Positions 50,625 through 60,891 of a stretch of 64,000 bases of DNA are shown here, one piece after another. Each line of letters starts with the position of its first letter. The stretch's first letter is position 1. The stretch lies in the NCBI GenBank assembly GCA_024704765.1, contig JAKMXF010000044.1, forward strand, positions 372,001 to 436,000, given 5' to 3'. A model generated the notes under the pieces. That model was not told the origin of the DNA. It saw only the letters and a program-made list of their open reading frames with translations, and did not search any database. A program made the position numbers and the translations under genes. This DNA is from Oopsacas minuta. Taxonomy: Eukaryota > Animalia > Porifera.

Positions 50625-52171
50625 CTGCCTATTGATTGGCTGTATTATATTCTGCCAATTATAATTGGTTTTGGTATATTTTTGTATTTCGAATTTGAAT
50701 ACATAATAACATACCACAGATGGTAGTTTGTATGTTTCTTTCTTCTTCCTCTATCATTCCTCTATGAAGGCTATTTCTACCTACGAAACCTTGTTGTAAT
50801 GCACATGCATAGCGCCCCAACACAGCACGCGAAGAGGGTTACAGAAGTGCAAAATTGTGTGAAGAAATGGCAAAAAGAGGGAAATGGTCGTAAGATGTGC
50901 ACTGCGCGTCCTTCCTTCCTCTCCATGACTTTAAGGTATGGTGCATACAAGGACACTAATTGGAAAGTGCCAATTAATTTGCATGATATTCTGGAGATAA
51001 ATGTAAGAGATGAAACCATTAAAGCAGAACCCTTAGTGACGATGGGTCAGATTCTGCTAGTTTAATCCCCAAAGGTTGAACCTTGGCTAGTGTACCAGAA
51101 CTTGACGACTTGACAGTCGGGGGCCTAATCATGGGTGTAGGCGTGGAATCTTCTTCACACATATACGGACTGTTCCAACACATTTGTGTGTCTTTCGATA
51201 TTATAACCTCAGATGGTGATTTAGTGCATTGTAGCAAAACAGAGCACCAAGATCTATTCCATGCTATCCCATGGTCTCACGGTAGTATCGGATTTCTAGT
51301 AGCAGCTGAGCTAAAGATTATTCCTTCTAAGCCTTTTGTTAAGTTAAATTATTTTCCTTTTGAAAGTAAAAAAGTCATTTATTGAAAGTTTTACTAAAGA
51401 ATCAAACGATGATAAAAATGATTTTGTTGAAGGAATTTTATTAACAAAATGTTCTGGAGTGGTGATGCTGGTACTTATTCCGACGCACCTAAAGCTGCAA
51501 GCGCGATTAACCGCATTGGACAATTTTGGAAGCCTTGGTTCTACAAATATTTGGAGACGATACAATCTACAGGCTCTTGTACTGAGTATATTCCTCTGAG
51601 AGATTATTATCACAGACACACAAGCGGGATGTTCTGGGAGATGGAAGAGATCATACCATTCGGTAATCATCCTGTCTTCCGTTTTGCCTGTGGTTGGTTA
51701 ATGCCACCCAAAGCGTCCTTACTAAAGTTAACGCAAGGAAAGACAATAAAACGACTCTATGAAGAGAAACATGTGATTCAGGACATGTTCATGCCAGTTG
51801 ATACTCTCTCTGAAATTTTGGAGGTTTTTGAAGAGCAATTTAAAGTTTACCCTCTCTGGTTGTGTCCGTTCAAACTTCCACAAAATCCAGGTCTAGTCCA
51901 CCCCAAGCAAGATAAGACTATGATGTATGTAGATGTAGGAGCTTACAGTGTGCCTAAAGTTGAAAACTTCCAAGCGAAAAAGGCTTTGAAATGTGTCGAA
52001 CATTTCGTGTGTAAGAAGGATGGGTTTCAAATGCTGTATGCAGATAATACATTAACTCGTGAGGAGTTTGGTGAGATGTTTGATCGTGAGCTTTATGATA
52101 ATGTTAGGGAGAGATATGGATGTGTGAATGCATTTCCTGATGTCTATGATAAGGTAGGAAGACATGCATAG
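50625..52171 (+). pseudogene. DHCR24: Delta(24)-sterol reductase pseudogene (full-length homology, disrupted 5' half)
   Basis: The reconstructed reading follows DHCR24 end to end (HRW*FVCFFLLPLS, MCTARP, EPLVTMGQ, PELDDLTVGGLIMG, YGLFQHIC, AIPWSHGSIGFL, KPWFYK, PLRDYYHRH, YPLWLCPF, FQMLYAD, AFPDVYDK). Lesions: no ATG, TAG 50724-26, -1 near 51053, TGA 51077-79 at a conserved Trp, +1 in A-run 51368-73, -1 near 51470. Confidence 0.9.
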
Positions 52172-52628
52172 AAGTGATTGCAATAATTTGAATCAAAGCT
52201 CTCTATGTTTATGTACATGTATACGTATATTTGATTATCCCCCTTTCTTAATTCGTTATTCGTATATTTTGCTAGATCGTATTTTTTGTATATTTTTGGT
52301 TGATAATGTTTTCTTGAAATAATATGTATTTATGCTAAATTCATTCGCTATACTCTTCCTTTCAGTTTGAATTACACTTTGAATAGTATACAAACATATA
52401 ATATACGTGTGTTTTGTAGTGGTCATGAATTCAATGGAACTTCTTTAATACGATCACCAACGGATGGTTTGTTCGCTTTATCAGGAGTTCGTATTAACCT
52501 GAGTAATACCAATTGAACAAATATTCAGGGATCTGATTTTGTGTGAATATTTGTTCGTCTTTCCTGAAATTCGTATTATCGAGGTTACACTTTCTTTATA
52601 CTATTGGATAGTCACATTAGCTTATAAA

Positions 52629-53306
52629 ATGGCTACAAATACTCCAACTAGTCCTGATGACGTAGCATCTGAGTTAGATACAGTTACTCTACTAGAGAGC
52701 ACTGTAGAACAAGAGATGGATGTGTTAGATACTCCTATCAATATTAAAAACAAGAAACAAGCTGTTGATTTCCGCAGAATCCCTGTACCCCCGAATCGAT
52801 TCACTCCCCTCAAGAACAACTGGATGAAAATATTCACACCTTGTGTTCAACATATGCAGCTACACATTAGAATAAATTTACGTAATAAATGTGTAGAACT
52901 CAAAACTTCAAAGGAAACGACAGACCCGGGCGCCATTCAGAAAGCAGCTGATTTTGTCAAAGCATTTATGCTAGGTTTTGAAGTTGATGACGCAATAGCT
53001 CTACTAAGATTAGATGAATTGTTTATTGAATCATTTGAGATACAGGACGTTAAACCGTTGAAAGGAGACCATCTCTCCCGAGCTATTGGAAGGATCGCTG
53101 GGAGGGGTGGTAAGACTAAATTCACTATTGAGAATATAACAAAGACTAGAGTCGTCCTAGCTGAAAGTAAGATACATATTCTAGGTGCATACCAGAATAT
53201 TAGGGTGGCAAGAACCGCGATTTGTAATCTTATCCTCGGCAGTCCTCCTTCTAAGGTGTATGGTTCTCTGAAGATTATTGCTAGCAGAATACAAGCTCAA
53301 CTCTAA
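52629..53306 (+). CDS. PNO1: RNA-binding protein PNO1/Dim2 (KH domains, 40S biogenesis), intronless
   Basis: [65 protein letters not shown] at 52629. Confidence 0.97.
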
Positions 53307-53429: not shown

Positions 53430-54461
53430 ATGGCGATGGAAGAACCAAACTCTTCCACCTTCAACATAGAGTTGTTAGAAGATCCTCAGGACTCTATCGA
53501 TCCCTCCCTTATATCTGAAAATTGTAGCCTATTCTACGAGAGAGCGGAACAAGGCTACATATGTAAGGTATGTGATCACCAATACGCATCACGAAGATAC
53601 GTACTATTCCACCTAACCAACTCTCATAACATACCTACACACTCCTGGCCTACTTGTGATAAATGTGGTAAGATATTCACGAAACCTTCAAAACTAGCAG
53701 TTCATATTAATAACCATCCTAAGATGAAACTTGAAAAAGATTCTGACATAATTGATAATTTTCAGGTAATCTATCCTTGTAAAACTACTGACATTAAAGT
53801 AATAAAATCGCCACCTACAGCTACAGAGCATCATCCTAAGAGCACCAAGCACAGGACACCAAAACCTAAGCTTTTGACAGTTTATTTCATCAGATCATCT
53901 CTCCCGGAAACTTACAAGTCTAATCCTCATAAGTGTGGTAAATGCTTCAAATCTTTCCTTACACTACAAGATAGAGATATTCATAGAGAATTGATACACA
54001 CGGAAATATCCTCTCTCACTCCTCAGAGCAAAGCTGTTACCAGAAAGACAAAACGTAATTTGAAAAGGATGAAACTAAACAAATTAAAGAACAAACAAAC
54101 ACACAGATCTAGCAAACCAGTAAGCAATGCTACATCATCAAAAAACTCTACGTTTTCTGATGCTAATGATCCAGGTCCCTCTCAGAGAAAGAAAATAGGG
54201 AGACCACTCGGTTCTATGAGCAGAAAGTATTCATATTCTCATCCTGACAGTCTAAATGAATCTGCACGGCTAGGAGATACAGATAATGATTCTAATCTCA
54301 TCACCTTTATTAGGAGAGAAAATTCAACATCTCCTATAGATTCTGAGTTAATGAACATGTCAAGTTTCCTGATTCCTAAAGAAGAGATAGAAGATGGAAA
54401 ATACTCTCCTCCTCGCGAATTTAATATTCTAATGAATGACCCTTCTACTAATATTATGTAG
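53430..54461 (+). CDS. C2H2 zinc-finger protein (3 fingers) with AT-hook-like motif
   Basis: CKVC..HLTNSH, CDKC..HINNH and CGKC..HRELIH fingers; basic stretch and RKKIGRPLGS. Confidence 0.85.
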   Translation: MAMEEPNSSTFNIELLEDPQDSIDPSLISENCSLFYERAEQGYICKVCDHQYASRRYVLFHLTNSHNIPTHSWPTCDKCGKIFTKPSKLAVHINNHPKMKLEKDSDIIDNFQVIYPCKTTDIKVIKSPPTATEHHPKSTKHRTPKPKLLTVYFIRSSLPETYKSNPHKCGKCFKSFLTLQDRDIHRELIHTEISSLTPQSKAVTRKTKRNLKRMKLNKLKNKQTHRSSKPVSNATSSKNSTFSDANDPGPSQRKKIGRPLGSMSRKYSYSHPDSLNESARLGDTDNDSNLITFIRRENSTSPIDSELMNMSSFLIPKEEIEDGKYSPPREFNILMNDPSTNIM

Positions 54462-56335: not shown

Positions 56336-58180
56336 ATGTCTCTAGTTCGAAAAGTAATTCTTGCTATTTCCATCTCATTGCTCATTTTGACTATTCAAAC
56401 AGAACGGGTCTGTCCTCCTAACTTTTCTACTGAATATCAATCTCTCTGCTCTATTCCTTCTGTTTGTGACTGTGACTATTATCGTGGTTGCAGAGAATGC
56501 TGTTCCTACATTCCAATATCAAACTTGTGTAACTACACATCATCTAACTATTTCTCTATCGATAGCAGTAGCACAGTATTGAGCTGTGACACAGGCTACT
56601 CTCTACTCTACGTAGATTCTCTCTCTTTCTTTAGAAAGTGTTCTGAATACTGTGAATGTGATGCAAACACTAACAATTGTGAATATTGCTGTAAGGTAAC
56701 AGAGCTCTCTTGTTATAGAAGAGAGTCAGTAGTTGTAAATACTACCATTAGTTTCACTGATATCAAATCTATCGCATCATTAGCCACTCTCCCAACTAAC
56801 TATACTGCTACTCTTCGCAATCCGATTATTGATCAGGGAGCATGTGGATCCAGCCACGCCATATCAGCTGCTAGCGTATTCTCAGAGAGATTGAGTAGAT
56901 TCTACGGTACGATGGTATCTGTATCTCCTCAGAACTTTCTATGCCAAGGAACTTCTATCTTTAATTCCACGATTAACCTGTATCCAGGCTGTTCGGGTGG
57001 TATTGCATACGATGTACTCAGTTCTCTGAGTGAGTATCCAGGTCACTTGACTTGTACTGGAGGTTGTAGGACAGGATGTCTACCTTATGATGGGTACTAC
57101 GGGGGAGTGATTGATGTCAGTTCTGCTAGCCAGTGTAGAGTTGGATTCACAAAAGATGAGTCAGTTGTTACAGAAATAAGATGTCTAACTGCTTGCAATT
57201 GTAGTACACAAGCTAATTGTGATTGTTGTAAGCGAGAAGACAACTTCTGTTTAGCAGATGTATTTAACTACTCTACTGCTTGTGATGCTCTCCCCCCTGA
57301 CACGCCATACCGTACTTCTTGTACTGACACCTGTACCGCAGGATGTTCCAACCCCGCCTTCTCTTCACAGGAGAGATATCGAGCTAGAAATGTAACAACT
57401 TGTTTGATATATAACGGAAATTGGCCAGCTATGCCCAATGCTGATTTAGAGAGTGTAGTTATGTGTAATCTCTTCACTGAGGGTGTTATGACTGTAACAA
57501 TGCTAGTGAATGACACATTCCTTACTTTCTTTCAGGACAACCCTGACAGAATATTCAACAGCTCGTCTCCCCAGGGTCTGTCTATCGGGGTACAGACATT
57601 CGTGTTGATAGGCTGGGGAGTAGGGAGTGGTAGTCCTGGGATAAAGTTCTGGAGATTGGCCACCAACTGGGGGACTAAATTCGGGTTAGATGGGGTTATT
57701 TTGGTAGAACGAGGCATCAATTTACTCAATATAGAGAGTGAGATCTGTATGATTGGAGCTGCAGCAGATCTCCCCAACCCTCAGCAACAGGTCAGCGGAG
57801 AATCCCCGGGCATTCCCTTCCTCTCCAGTCAGAGAGATCTGCCTGAAACAAACCAATGGTTTTCTCTCCAGACAGACGATACAGACTTGCAAGCTGCCAT
57901 GTCAAAGCTATATGGCAGTAACATAACAGTTGCTAATGACGTCACTGTCCTAATTTCTCAAGGACAACTAGCTTCTGGACTGTTAATATATGCTAACTTT
58001 AGTGTTGGGAATTTTAGTTATGAAGGGTTGGTGTTACGTCCAGCTTACGACAGCAGTGAGTATGTGATTATTAATAATGTACCTCCAATAGATCGTCTTC
58101 TCAGTTCTTCTCCACTCATCCTGGGTAACGCTCTCCTGCTTGCTATCTTGCTTGTTTTTCTACCCATAATATTGTTTTAG
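56336..58180 (+). CDS. Secreted, membrane-anchored, Cys-rich cathepsin-B/TINAG-like papain-fold protein, predicted inactive, 614 aa
   Basis: Signal peptide; IIDQGACGSSHAIS, SPQNFLC, GCSGG, FVLIGWG, FWRLATNWG, FGLDG, NLLNIES match the peptidase C1A framework; hydrophobic C-terminus. Confidence 0.85.
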   Translation: MSLVRKVILAISISLLILTIQTERVCPPNFSTEYQSLCSIPSVCDCDYYRGCRECCSYIPISNLCNYTSSNYFSIDSSSTVLSCDTGYSLLYVDSLSFFRKCSEYCECDANTNNCEYCCKVTELSCYRRESVVVNTTISFTDIKSIASLATLPTNYTATLRNPIIDQGACGSSHAISAASVFSERLSRFYGTMVSVSPQNFLCQGTSIFNSTINLYPGCSGGIAYDVLSSLSEYPGHLTCTGGCRTGCLPYDGYYGGVIDVSSASQCRVGFTKDESVVTEIRCLTACNCSTQANCDCCKREDNFCLADVFNYSTACDALPPDTPYRTSCTDTCTAGCSNPAFSSQERYRARNVTTCLIYNGNWPAMPNADLESVVMCNLFTEGVMTVTMLVNDTFLTFFQDNPDRIFNSSSPQGLSIGVQTFVLIGWGVGSGSPGIKFWRLATNWGTKFGLDGVILVERGINLLNIESEICMIGAAADLPNPQQQVSGESPGIPFLSSQRDLPETNQWFSLQTDDTDLQAAMSKLYGSNITVANDVTVLISQGQLASGLLIYANFSVGNFSYEGLVLRPAYDSSEYVIINNVPPIDRLLSSSPLILGNALLLAILLVFLPIILF

Positions 58181-60036
58181 ATACTTTTGTACTTACCAAT
58201 AGCTGCTTCATTTATACTATAGTAATTCAGTGTGTTAAGTATTTTACAGGTGTTTCTTTATTTACATTTAATTAATGAGTTCCGGTTACTTGTGAAACAA
58301 ATGGTGGAATTTCATTTATAACCAAGCAAAGAAATGATCCACGCACGGCATGATTAATTCAGATTATAACAACATAGTCTACACTTGATCAACTTAAAGG
58401 CTGCAATTACAACTGGTGCATGCAACAATGTTGCGATGTGCATAGCCATGTTGAATTTCCATGCAACTTTGTTGAAATATGCAGGCAACTTCAGATGATA
58501 CAAGCCGCTTAGCCAAACCTTGTGTAACGCTACAAGGGGGAGTGTAGTAAGCAGAGTAGCAACCGGCATACCCATTCTTAAAATTATCTAATACAGGCAA
58601 ACCTCCGAGATACGGAAATCATCAGAGGTTACCCTTATACACTCTTAATATACTATTTTAAGGCCGAAATATCAGATGTTAGCAATAATAAGTACTACCA
58701 ATATTTATTGAAAACCGAGTAACCGAGGAGCAAGTTTTGGCCTAGAGATTCCAAGTGTCTCCAGTCTGTAATCTATAATAGATATAATATAGATATAGAT
58801 TCTATATATGGACCTAAGATTTAAATAGATAAAATGAAGGATATTTTGGCCATCCAGTCTTCAGACGAACTCCTCTAGTTTCTTTGTATCTGCTCCTCCA
58901 ATATGACACGGGCTCCGCCCCCAAATTCCTAAATGGAGCCGCCAACTAAGGCTCAGCTCCTCAGAATTGGCGAGCTCACCTAGCCCTAGCGCCGCTCTTT
59001 GGTGCGCGTATATTTAACGTTGTGGCTACACTTCTGGCCAGAAGGATAAATATATGGGTGCCGTTACCAGCATACAAGATTATCCTCTAAAAATACCATA
59101 AACCACGTCCACTTTAAGAAACAAAACTTTGGGTGCATTGCCAGCACTGTAACCACTTCTCTCTTATTGAAATAGATATACAATCAACAAATAAAAATAC
59201 AAACATATATGCATATATTCCCTATATTTGAATTGCTTCTATAATTTGTTCTTGTCGGATCAATGGTGTGTAAATCATCAATTATTTCTAGTCATTACTG
59301 CTAATTACAAAGCCACCATTTGTATTAAACTGCTTCCATCACCCTTAACATTCCAGATTGAAACGTTGTTTCTATGATTTTGATAGAATTTAATTCCAGA
59401 GATGTATTTCCTGTCGAATACTGTGTGAATTGAACTAAAAACCACAATTCAATATTCAACAAGAATCTCAGTAGCAGCTGCTCTATTCTGAGATTGTTAG
59501 TTGCACAACAGAAATACAATTTACATCATTTCTTGATTAGAGAGATTATATGCTTTCAGAGAATCTTGTTTCAACTTGGTTTTCTATAAGAAGGGTTGTT
59601 TCTCGTATCGAGCATTTCCCCTCATATTTTTCTCTCTTTCAATATTGTTTCAAGAATTGCTCTGATTATTATAATTGCTATTATACAGGTTGCTTGAGAG
59701 AATTGTCTTATCGATGTACAGAGACCCTTTCTAGATTGGGCTCAGCTTTTTCGTTGTCAAATTTAGAAATATTTATCTTCAATATTCAGATATTGCAGTT
59801 CACCCCTGGGACTATTTCCAGACTTTAGGTGAGTAATTTTATAATATATTGCAATTACGTTTGCATAAATTTTATGAATCTCTTATATTCTTTGATAATT
59901 TGGGGAATATGATTCATATTAATTAATCATAAGTAATCTTCTCTTCTTTGAGTTCTGCAATTCATTCAGTATTTGATAGTTCTATCATCAAATACTTTTA
60001 TATATCAGTTTGATTTCAATTCTGTATTCGTATCCG

Positions 60037-60891
60037 ATGGAGTCTGACTTAGTTTGTAACTTTGCTAAATGTCGTCAAACGCTTGGGAGCTTCGGCTGGA
60101 TCACCTCATGTTCCCACGTGTTCTGTGACGAACACGGTAACCATGAATTCAACAGATCAGCGAACAAGCGGTGTCCGGCTTGTAAAAGCGATATGAACGG
60201 CAAGTTCAATATTGTCCGAGCAGACCTACACCCAAGCGAGGAGTATAAGTCAATGGCACTAGCTGGACAGAGACCTGAGGTAGTGATGGAGATCTGTAGT
60301 CGTGCTATCGCTCTCTGGATGTATCAGTCTACTCAAGAGAAATTGTATCACGAATATTCTGCTAGACAAGCTAAGGAGAAAGCTTGTGATCTGGAGCAGT
60401 ATTATGAGAAGCAAATTGTGGATACAAAGACCGAACTAAATGTTATCCAAATGCAACTAAATGGTTTGAGGAAAGATAACGAAGAGTTGAAGAAGAATTT
60501 CAATTTAGTTTCAGATAAATTACAGGAGCGCACTAGACACTGTCATAAACTGCAATCACAGAACGATTCTCTCAAAAGGCAAGCAATCAAACCGGGTATA
60601 TTCATTGAAGATGACGTCACCCCTCCATCACAAGCTGCGATGACTGGACAACCTTCTGACTTTCACTTTGTGTTCGATCACTCAGCTGATTCCCACCCAA
60701 TTCAACAACAATTTGATATGCAACCATTCCGACCCATCTCTCCCCATCATCCTTTATCTACCCTACATAGCAATACATTAGCTCCTCATGACGCTAATCT
60801 GGAGAATGTGCCTCGGGTCATTATGCCGTTTGGAACCCCACCTCTTGATGGCGAGATTACCAAGAAATTGGGACGGAGGAAACTCAACTAG
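60037..60891 (+). CDS. CCNB1IP1: E3 ligase CCNB1IP1/HEI10 (meiotic crossover RING protein), intronless
   Basis: LVCNFAKCR..L...WITSCSHVFCDEHG RING, CPAC, LHPSEEYKSMALAGQRPE, SRAIALWMYQ, then coiled coil. ATG at 60037. Confidence 0.95.
   Translation: MESDLVCNFAKCRQTLGSFGWITSCSHVFCDEHGNHEFNRSANKRCPACKSDMNGKFNIVRADLHPSEEYKSMALAGQRPEVVMEICSRAIALWMYQSTQEKLYHEYSARQAKEKACDLEQYYEKQIVDTKTELNVIQMQLNGLRKDNEELKKNFNLVSDKLQERTRHCHKLQSQNDSLKRQAIKPGIFIEDDVTPPSQAAMTGQPSDFHFVFDHSADSHPIQQQFDMQPFRPISPHHPLSTLHSNTLAPHDANLENVPRVIMPFGTPPLDGEITKKLGRRKLN

Follow-up and report, generated by a model that had tools for sequence, protein, structure and literature searches.

A glass-sponge gene encodes a cathepsin B-type protein without its catalytic triad, with a predicted cystatin-fold domain and a membrane-anchor-like tail

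Results

The window analysed here, a stretch of 64,000 nucleotides from the genome of the glass sponge Oopsacas minuta (NCBI assembly GCA_024704765.1, scaffold JAKMXF010000044.1), carries a complete single-exon coding sequence on the + strand at 56336..58180. Read from the list of open reading frames (ORFs) and from the sequence itself, the coding sequence runs from the ATG at 56336 to the stop at 58178–58180 and comprises 614 codons plus stop. Its product, designated P0001, has a papain fold of the cathepsin B type in which all three catalytic residues have been replaced. The exact protein is present in the annotation of the same scaffold, and the orthologues begin and end at equivalent positions. 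The original prediction, made from the sequence without database searches, had recognized a papain-fold pseudoprotease at this locus and closed the gene at 57760. That end is wrong: the ORF continues for 420 bases to 58180, and these bases code for the predicted cystatin-fold domain and a hydrophobic tail.

The papain-fold domain (Peptidase_C1) spans amino acids (aa) ~151–480 (56786..57775, + strand, as are all features described below) and is split by an insert. Pfam family PF00112 matched P0001 in two stretches with an E value of 2.9e-14, and in a phmmer search against solved structures the top matches were trypanosomatid and mammalian cathepsin B (E 4e-10). The phmmer alignment to Trypanosoma brucei cathepsin B (7e3e) sets CGSS against CGSC, Gln against the His of GGHAVRLVGWG, and Thr against the Asn of ANSW. 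Direct reading of the codons confirmed all three substitutions as originally proposed: AGC at 56852..56854 encodes Ser173 in QGACGSSHA, at the position of the catalytic Cys; CAG at 57593..57595 encodes Gln420 in GVQTFVLIGWG, at the position of the catalytic His; and ACC at 57662..57664 encodes Thr443 in LATNWG, at the position of the catalytic Asn. Among 93 aligned relatives, the columns of S173, Q420 and T443 hold at least 90% Cys, His and Asn, respectively. The oxyanion Gln167 and Cys170 are invariant across the same alignment, in agreement with the earlier observation that the oxyanion Gln and the Cys framework are kept. An active C1A peptidase has Cys25, His159 and Asn175 (papain numbering), where P0001 has Ser173, Gln420 and Thr443. 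Because the nucleophile, the base and the orienting residue are all replaced, no cysteine-protease chemistry is possible.

Structure prediction, which had been suggested as a check, returned a papain fold of the cathepsin B type. An AF2 model built from the 93-sequence alignment reached a predicted template-modelling score (pTM) of 0.70, with a predicted local distance difference test score (pLDDT) of about 90 both in the protease core and across aa 500–590; a 6-sequence alignment of the family had given a pLDDT of 29. The top Foldseek match was cathepsin B 1cte_A (E 1.7e-12, target template-modelling score TMt 0.76). Against representatives, VIA-align found bovine cathepsin B 1qdq_A, with Z 25.5, a root-mean-square deviation (rmsd) of 2.5 over 224 residues (model 152–479) and 26% identity. 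Cathepsin B was therefore the best match in phmmer, Foldseek and VIA-align alike, and the assignment of the protein as cathepsin B-like stands. Two features of cathepsin B proper are missing. Pfam detected neither PF08127 Propeptide_C1 nor the I29 propeptide in P0001, whereas Propeptide_C1 is present in the canonical cathepsin B rows P0100 and P0127. The His–His pair of the occluding loop is also absent, as neither of the two His residues of P0001 lies in the loop region.

We considered whether the protein could still be an enzyme through other residues, for example as an esterase, transferase or atypical hydrolase that uses Ser173 and the adjacent His174. Both residues are invariant in all orthologues, His174 replaces an otherwise nearly universal Trp or Tyr, the oxyanion Gln167 is retained, and no part of the protein is more conserved than the motifs that form the cleft. 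However, neighbours at positions i and i+1 at the start of a helix are badly placed for a dyad, and there is no general base at the position equivalent to His159. To our knowledge, a Ser–His dyad at i/i+1 has no precedent. Motif conservation alone does not imply catalysis, because the conserved motifs also form the core of the fold. We give this enzymatic explanation a very slim chance.

In P0001, a putative signal peptide (aa 1–22, 56336..56401), read by eye as a basic n-region followed by a hydrophobic core, precedes a Cys-rich N-terminal region (aa 23–150) that contains 16 Cys and two copies of a 7-Cys module. Module 1 (aa 38–65, 56447..56530) reads C-x5-C-x-C-x5-C-x2-CC-x8-C, and the Cys of module 2 (aa 102–126, 56639..56713) are invariant in all orthologues. 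Module 3 (aa 283–305, 57182..57250) lies within the insert of the protease domain. The general pattern is C-x3-5-C-x-C-x5-6-C-x1-2-CC-x6-8-C; the three copies can be aligned in register with one another and with the one copy found in the euglenid-labelled relative P0021, and all seven Cys are invariant. The Cys-rich insert itself (aa 236–372, 57041..57451) starts with the framework residues C240/C244/C248 and, judging from the position of the GC.PY motif, probably sits at the occluding loop. The occluding-loop region is larger by about 100 residues, and 253 residues separate the Q..CG and His motifs in P0001, versus about 150–180 in ordinary C1A proteins. No Pfam family, somatomedin-B (SMB) included, matched aa 23–150 at E<=10, and the isolated N-terminal, insert and C-terminal pieces matched nothing meaningful in Pfam.

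In total, P0001 contains 37 Cys, 36 of which are invariant in the sponge family, and 13 N-glycosylation sequons (8 conserved), which makes N-glycosylation of the protein likely. It contains only 2 His. One of these is His174 (56855–56857), directly after the dead nucleophile and invariant in all sponge orthologues; in relatives the same position is occupied by Trp (61 of 77) or, in the nearest clade, by Tyr (10 of 11).

Beyond a short linker (aa 481–505), aa ~506–589 (57851..58102) are predicted by the model to form a cystatin fold, with a helix at 516–526, four strands, and QLASG at the position of the QxVxG loop. The VIA-align matches to this domain were human cystatin F 2ch9_A (Z 10.1, rmsd 3.0, 79 residues, model 506–588) and mouse CRES 6uio_A (Z 8.8). 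In hhalign, the sponge domain matched alignments of cystatin domains weakly but in register (probability 6%, E 0.006), and a profile search of the PDB with the sponge domain yielded chance-level matches only. We assign the domain as cystatin because of its position in a shared architecture, described below, together with its predicted fold. BLASTP and hidden Markov model (HMM) alignments of P0001 to active relatives extend through the cystatin domain, and BLASTP to P0014 continues through the linker into this domain, up to QLASG in P0001 and QVVNG in P0014. In active relatives and dead sponge proteins alike, the glycine in the hairpin of the cystatin loop is almost invariant, and the QLASG loop is invariant within the sponge family. 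We hypothesize that the conserved loop would fit a conserved contact between the cleft and the cystatin domain.

The protein ends in a tail that resembles a glycosylphosphatidylinositol (GPI) signal (aa 590–614, 58103..58177); read directly, it consists of an invariant SSS followed, after a short spacer, by a stretch that is hydrophobic to the last residue. All orthologues end inside this hydrophobic stretch without basic cytoplasmic residues, unlike the relatives described below, which have a transmembrane helix and an RKKR-type tail. Because of this combination of SSS, spacer and terminal hydrophobic stretch, and the lack of a cytoplasmic portion, P0001 is probably GPI-anchored.

A word-index protein search detected five relatives with 62–75% identity to P0001, all from ENA assemblies, and four of the five were examined with flanking DNA. 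In the window, the pseudoprotease gene is accompanied by PNO1 (52539–53306), a C2H2 zinc-finger gene (53430–54461) and a RING-finger gene (60010–60891), all ordinary animal genes, and the gene order PNO1 / C2H2 zinc-finger / pseudoprotease / RING is kept in five other assemblies. From synteny and identity, these five assemblies, ERZ25072730, ERZ25071281, ERZ25766962, ERZ25072740 and ERZ26869290, appear to be hexactinellids. Contamination was rejected as the source of the pseudoprotease gene because the gene sits among animal genes whose order is conserved. In all orthologues the triad is replaced by Ser, Gln and Thr and the Ser is followed by His174, a pattern which indicates that loss of the triad preceded the split of the sampled species.

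The ORF is intact, at 612–617 codons, in six assemblies (O. minuta plus the five others). The ratio of non-synonymous to synonymous substitution (dN/dS, Nei–Gojobori) for the whole gene is 0.09–0.22, with synonymous sites saturated between two subclades (dS 0.6 to above 3). Per domain, dN/dS is 0.06–0.28 everywhere except in the signal peptide (0.2–0.6) and the tail (0.4–0.6), where it is relaxed, as expected of signals that depend on composition only. The loss of all catalytic residues might suggest that the gene is an unexpressed or decaying relic on its way to becoming a pseudogene, but the ORF has stayed intact despite the saturated dS, the dN/dS is low, and all 36 framework Cys are conserved; a relic is scarcely credible. 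These codon-level data instead indicate a working gene under purifying selection and therefore a working non-enzyme.

Several database entries for the family at first appear to be fragments. The apparent truncation of P0002 disappears on inspection, as an upstream ORF continues in frame to the signal peptide. The P0006 entry is also truncated and lies within an intact 645-codon ORF in two assemblies (L007:3389-5326 and L008:3389-5326); P0006, P0007, P0008 and P0029 represent a truncated call plus off-frame ORFs over that one intact 645-codon gene. Because an intact gene underlies them, we regard such fragments as artefacts of prokaryote-style metagenome gene calling. Upstream of the conserved genes, a 240-aa ORF at 51449–52171 of the window gave no Pfam match at E<=0.001. 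In another assembly, a short FAD_binding_4 ORF (L001:480-899) occupies the place syntenic to it.

For relatives outside the glass sponges, the sponge-family profile was run exhaustively with HMMER against 1.84 billion cluster representatives, of which 750 matched at E<=1e-3. Below an E value of 1e-21, the matches consisted only of the sponge family itself and mis-framed fragments of it. The next-best proteins (P0009, P0012, P0013, P0014 and P0021; E 1e-20 to 1e-13) have an intact QG.CG.CY ... GHAVVIVGWG ... NSW active site, followed by a C-terminal domain with QxVxG, a transmembrane helix and a basic cytoplasmic tail. We refer to this unnamed group as the C1A–cystatin–transmembrane family. Neither TINAG-like nor silicatein-type proteins ranked among these nearest relatives. 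In those of the nearest active relatives that were scanned, Pfam gave Peptidase_C1 only, and neither Propeptide_C1 nor I29 was detected. A profile of the relatives' C-terminal domains matches solved cystatins (tick cystatin-2 at E 1.1e-5, multicystatin and mialostatin), and proteins related to this family exceed the Pfam Cystatin threshold. P0021 matched P0001 by BLASTP at 9e-21 over aa 7–491, so the N-terminal Cys-rich region is also common to both.

P0001 carries the marks of the C1A–cystatin–membrane family: it lacks a propeptide and has the SPQ motif and the C240/C244 pair. This pair, located before GC.PY, is present in 5/5 sponge sequences, in 11/11 sequences of the CG.CY clade and in 6/77 others of the 93-sequence alignment. 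P0001 also has a hydrophobic C-terminal membrane anchor, of the GPI-signal type rather than a transmembrane helix with a basic tail. Its identity to the C1A–cystatin–transmembrane relatives is 22–27%. Organism labels are attached to only two of these relatives, P0021 from a Peranema trichophorum transcriptome (EukProt) and P0012 from the haptophyte Haptolina brevifila, and the rest are environmental sequences without an organism label; the description of these relatives as protist thus depends on few labels. When the mixed alignment A2 served as query, a word-index search recovered nothing beyond unrelated C1 proteins and the sponge family itself; with P0021 as query, it recovered unrelated architectures from Pristionchus and Dendronephthya. 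Our literature searches found no description of a C1A–cystatin–membrane fusion or of a sponge cathepsin B pseudoprotease.

A few observations concern the wider set of C1A–cystatin proteins. P0012 (UniRef A0A7S2IK26, aa 1–1013) has ShK and MACPF/perforin domains N-terminal to its C1A–cystatin–transmembrane unit, so that a single membrane-tethered chain combines a pore-former with a protease. Outside the sponge-related clade, a C-terminal cystatin domain is also present in many soluble C1A proteins, among them P0018, P0054, P0078, P0112, P0087, P0152 and P0026; three of the soluble proteins are above the Pfam Cystatin threshold, and hhalign matched them to the corresponding domain of the sponge-related clade with a probability of 96%. 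A cystatin in cis after the C1A domain seems to be widespread in unlabelled environmental eukaryote data. The contig of the active relative P0052 (JGI 3300010052) also carries an ORF with a Frizzled domain (L006:8105-8818), which hints at an amoebozoan or holozoan source.

A phylogeny of C1A proteins was among the checks originally proposed. In a quick maximum-likelihood tree built from the C1 cores of 93 sequences, the sponge proteins form a clade with support 100 that falls within a 15-row CG.CY / cystatin / transmembrane group, beside the active relatives. The Ser-bearing rows P0053 (Owenia) and P0129 fall elsewhere in that tree. P0053 was taken to represent TINAG on the sole basis of its Atlas neighbours, the nearest Atlas structure clusters being named 'tubulointerstitial nephritis antigen-like'. 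Topology tests were run on a 47-row subset with a less thorough LG+G4 fast search, on a data set without a named vertebrate TINAG sequence. In both the free tree and the tree constrained to the CG.CY clade, the sponge proteins fall inside this clade or beside it, and the tree constrained to join sponge and TINAG-like rows was 14–21 log-likelihood (lnL) units worse, with a bootstrap proportion by resampling of estimated log-likelihoods (bp-RELL) of 0.03 and a P value of 0.137 in the approximately unbiased (AU) test (p-AU).

These results bear on the possibility that P0001 is a divergent orthologue of TINAG/TINAGL1, the matricellular cathepsin B-like pseudoproteases with Ser in place of Cys. TINAG/TINAGL1 and Drosophila Swim, secreted cathepsin B-like pseudoproteases whose N-terminus is rich in Cys and whose nucleophile is replaced by Ser, act as non-enzymatic binding proteins. 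P0001 shares the order of a Cys-rich N-terminus followed by a cathepsin B-like domain with Ser at the nucleophile, its 7-Cys pattern is loosely SMB-like, TINAG-like clusters occur in the Atlas structural list (TM 0.41), and a clade with P0053 and P0129 is not rejected by the AU test. However, both of these TINAG-like rows keep His and Asn (S, H, N versus S, Q, T in the sponges), lack the C240/C244 pair and score far lower in the exhaustive search (E 1.5e-9 versus 1e-20), and the constrained tree is worse by the margin and bp-RELL given above. TINAG-like proteins also lack both a membrane anchor and a cystatin domain at the C-terminus. The spacing of the 7-Cys module is unlike that of SMB, and aa 23–150 gave no SMB match at E<=10, although the TINAG-like P0053 likewise gives none. 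Glass sponges, moreover, have no basement membrane (PMC10280926). Because the architecture, the nearest relatives and the position in the tree all differ, orthology to TINAG/TINAGL1 is improbable. The concern that P0001 might be a plain TINAGL1 orthologue is thus largely answered by these three differences, with the AU result as the part that leaves the TINAG grouping unrejected.

Discussion

Taken together, our analysis leads us to propose that the gene encodes a surface glycoprotein of glass sponges, built on a dead cathepsin B-type fold, that descended from the membrane-tethered C1A–cystatin family and has a non-catalytic role in binding or adhesion. We consider this explanation probable. 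The product would be secreted, disulfide-rich, heavily N-glycosylated and probably GPI-anchored, with a central cathepsin B-type papain fold incapable of cysteine-protease chemistry. Its ancestors would have been membrane-tethered, propeptide-less C1A peptidases with a cystatin domain C-terminal to the protease, a family whose intact-triad members are represented by two organism-labelled protist records and by unlabelled environmental data. In the lineage to glass sponges, loss of the triad preceded the divergence of the sampled species, a GPI-type signal would have replaced the transmembrane helix and cytoplasmic tail, and a third 7-Cys module would have been added in the occluding-loop region. 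Since then, purifying selection has acted on every extracellular domain. The present-day protein most likely acts by binding or adhesion without catalysis, either on the outside of the membrane or on the lumenal side of a vesicle, and the former substrate cleft would have been preserved together with the cystatin-like wedge as a single structural or binding unit. Binding, rather than catalysis, is thus the role that we infer for P0001.

The original prediction had arrived at a non-enzymatic scaffold, ligand trap or matrix- or skeleton-associated surface protein. The non-enzymatic and surface elements of that view are in line with the absence of a usable triad, the purifying selection and the secreted or membrane-anchored character of the protein, and nothing in our data supports the link to matrix or skeleton. 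That prediction had not recognized the C-terminal cystatin-fold domain, the GPI-type tail, the three 7-Cys modules or the probable descent from active membrane-tethered C1A–cystatin proteins.

It should be noted that several observations weigh against the explanation that we prefer. The C-terminal domain of the sponge protein is not recognizable as a cystatin by sequence alone. The 15-row group that unites the sponge proteins with the C1A–cystatin–transmembrane family has a Shimodaira–Hasegawa-like approximate likelihood ratio (SH-aLRT) support of only 84, and the sponge stem branch, at 1.81, is very long. The AU test does not reject alternative groupings, the one with TINAG included (p-AU 0.137). 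Finally, the AF2 model has pLDDT values <50 for the N-terminal region and for most of the insert (256–345 low).

The occurrence of a Ser-bearing cathepsin in a silica-building glass sponge raises the question of whether the protein is associated with the skeleton, either as a functional analogue of silicatein or as a component of the spicule matrix or silicalemma. The host and the Ser at the Cys position, as in silicatein, would both fit, and hexactinellid spicule extracts hold unidentified minor bands >70 kDa (PMC10772126), which a glycosylated 614-aa protein could match. Against this, the Ser–His pair of the proposed silicatein chemistry is missing because the His position holds Gln, and the protein is of the cathepsin B type rather than the L type and has no I29 propeptide. 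The earlier distinction of this protein from the silicateins was therefore correct. In addition, P0001 has 2 His only and no His/Asp-rich or Ser/Lys-rich tracts. The identified silica proteins of hexactinellids, namely hexaxilin, perisilin (CAP-like) and glassin (His/Asp-rich), are unrelated to C1A, and their different folds rule out identity of P0001 with any of them. No silicatein was reported in either of the two glass-sponge genome papers. The paper on Aphrocallistes vastus describes one Ser-site cathepsin (Avas.s001.g1214.i1) without differential expression at the growth zone, an entry that may represent either the P0001 family or a cathepsin L-like pseudoprotease. A role in the skeleton, including the matrix or skeleton association suggested earlier, is in our view hard to sustain and very unlikely. 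We regard as a useful negative the conclusion that Ser at the Cys position of a glass-sponge cathepsin is no evidence of a silicatein.

Dead papain-fold proteins are a known kind, exemplified by TINAG, SERA5 and silicatein-like proteins, and P0001 appears to represent an independent origin. We found no description in the literature of its architecture, in which three 7-Cys modules and a GPI-type tail accompany a triple-dead cathepsin B core with a built-in predicted cystatin fold. The gene occurs as a single copy, in conserved order and under strong constraint, in at least six assemblies, which makes its product a candidate class-specific surface protein in a group whose syncytial tissue biology is poorly understood. 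The analysis also points to a wider uncharacterized family of propeptide-less, membrane-tethered C1A peptidases with a cystatin in cis, which raises the question of how such enzymes are activated.

More speculatively, P0001 could be the fossil of an undescribed mode of papain-type control, in which a cis cystatin acts as inhibitor or chaperone beside a membrane tether, with the dead, locked pair kept as a receptor or adhesion module. We advance this proposal tentatively and think it rather unlikely. If true, the cis cystatin would replace the propeptide as intramolecular inhibitor or chaperone of membrane-tethered C1A peptidases, and in glass sponges the enzyme–inhibitor pair would have been re-anchored by GPI, would have gained further Cys modules and would serve as a surface receptor or adhesion module specific to the class. 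Its presence in glass sponges would then go back either to transfer from a protist or to retention from a unicellular ancestor, with loss in other animals.

Comparison with known systems places P0001 closest to cathepsin B (C1A, MEROPS C01.060) in its core, with which it shares the GC.GG and GC.PY framework and an insert in the occluding-loop region. Unlike cathepsin B, it lacks Propeptide_C1 and the catalytic Cys, His and Asn, its loop region is about 100 residues longer, and it has in addition Cys modules at the N-terminus and, towards the C-terminus, a cystatin-fold domain and a membrane anchor. TINAG/TINAGL1 resembles P0001 in the Cys-rich N-terminus, the cathepsin B-like domain and the Ser at the nucleophile position, whereas the TINAG-like rows differ in their retained His and Asn and in having no extra Cys pair, cystatin domain or anchor. 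Demosponge silicatein is likewise a sponge C1A protein with Ser for the catalytic Cys; it forms axial filaments, and its cathepsin L-type fold, I29 propeptide and retained His and Asn have no counterpart in P0001. Plasmodium SERA5 is another non-catalytic papain-fold protein with a residue other than Cys at the nucleophile position (structural match 3ch3_X, Z 19.4), of unrelated lineage and architecture, and it keeps His and Asn. Cathepsin F-type enzymes carry C1A and a cystatin-like domain on one polypeptide, but there the cystatin-like domain is N-terminal, ahead of the I29 propeptide, and the enzymes are L-type, active and soluble. An Atlas cluster combining PF00112, PF08246 and PF00031 was among the entries of the structural list.

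A further comparison is with the unnamed C1A–cystatin–transmembrane family (P0009, P0013, P0014, P0021 and P0012), which shares with P0001 the order of signal peptide, optional Cys-rich N-terminus, C1A domain, cystatin domain and membrane anchor. Its members keep CG.CY...H...N and, judging from their sequences, look active. The sponge protein differs from them in being triple-dead, in its GPI-type end, in carrying QLASG rather than the canonical QxVxG, and in its third 7-Cys module.

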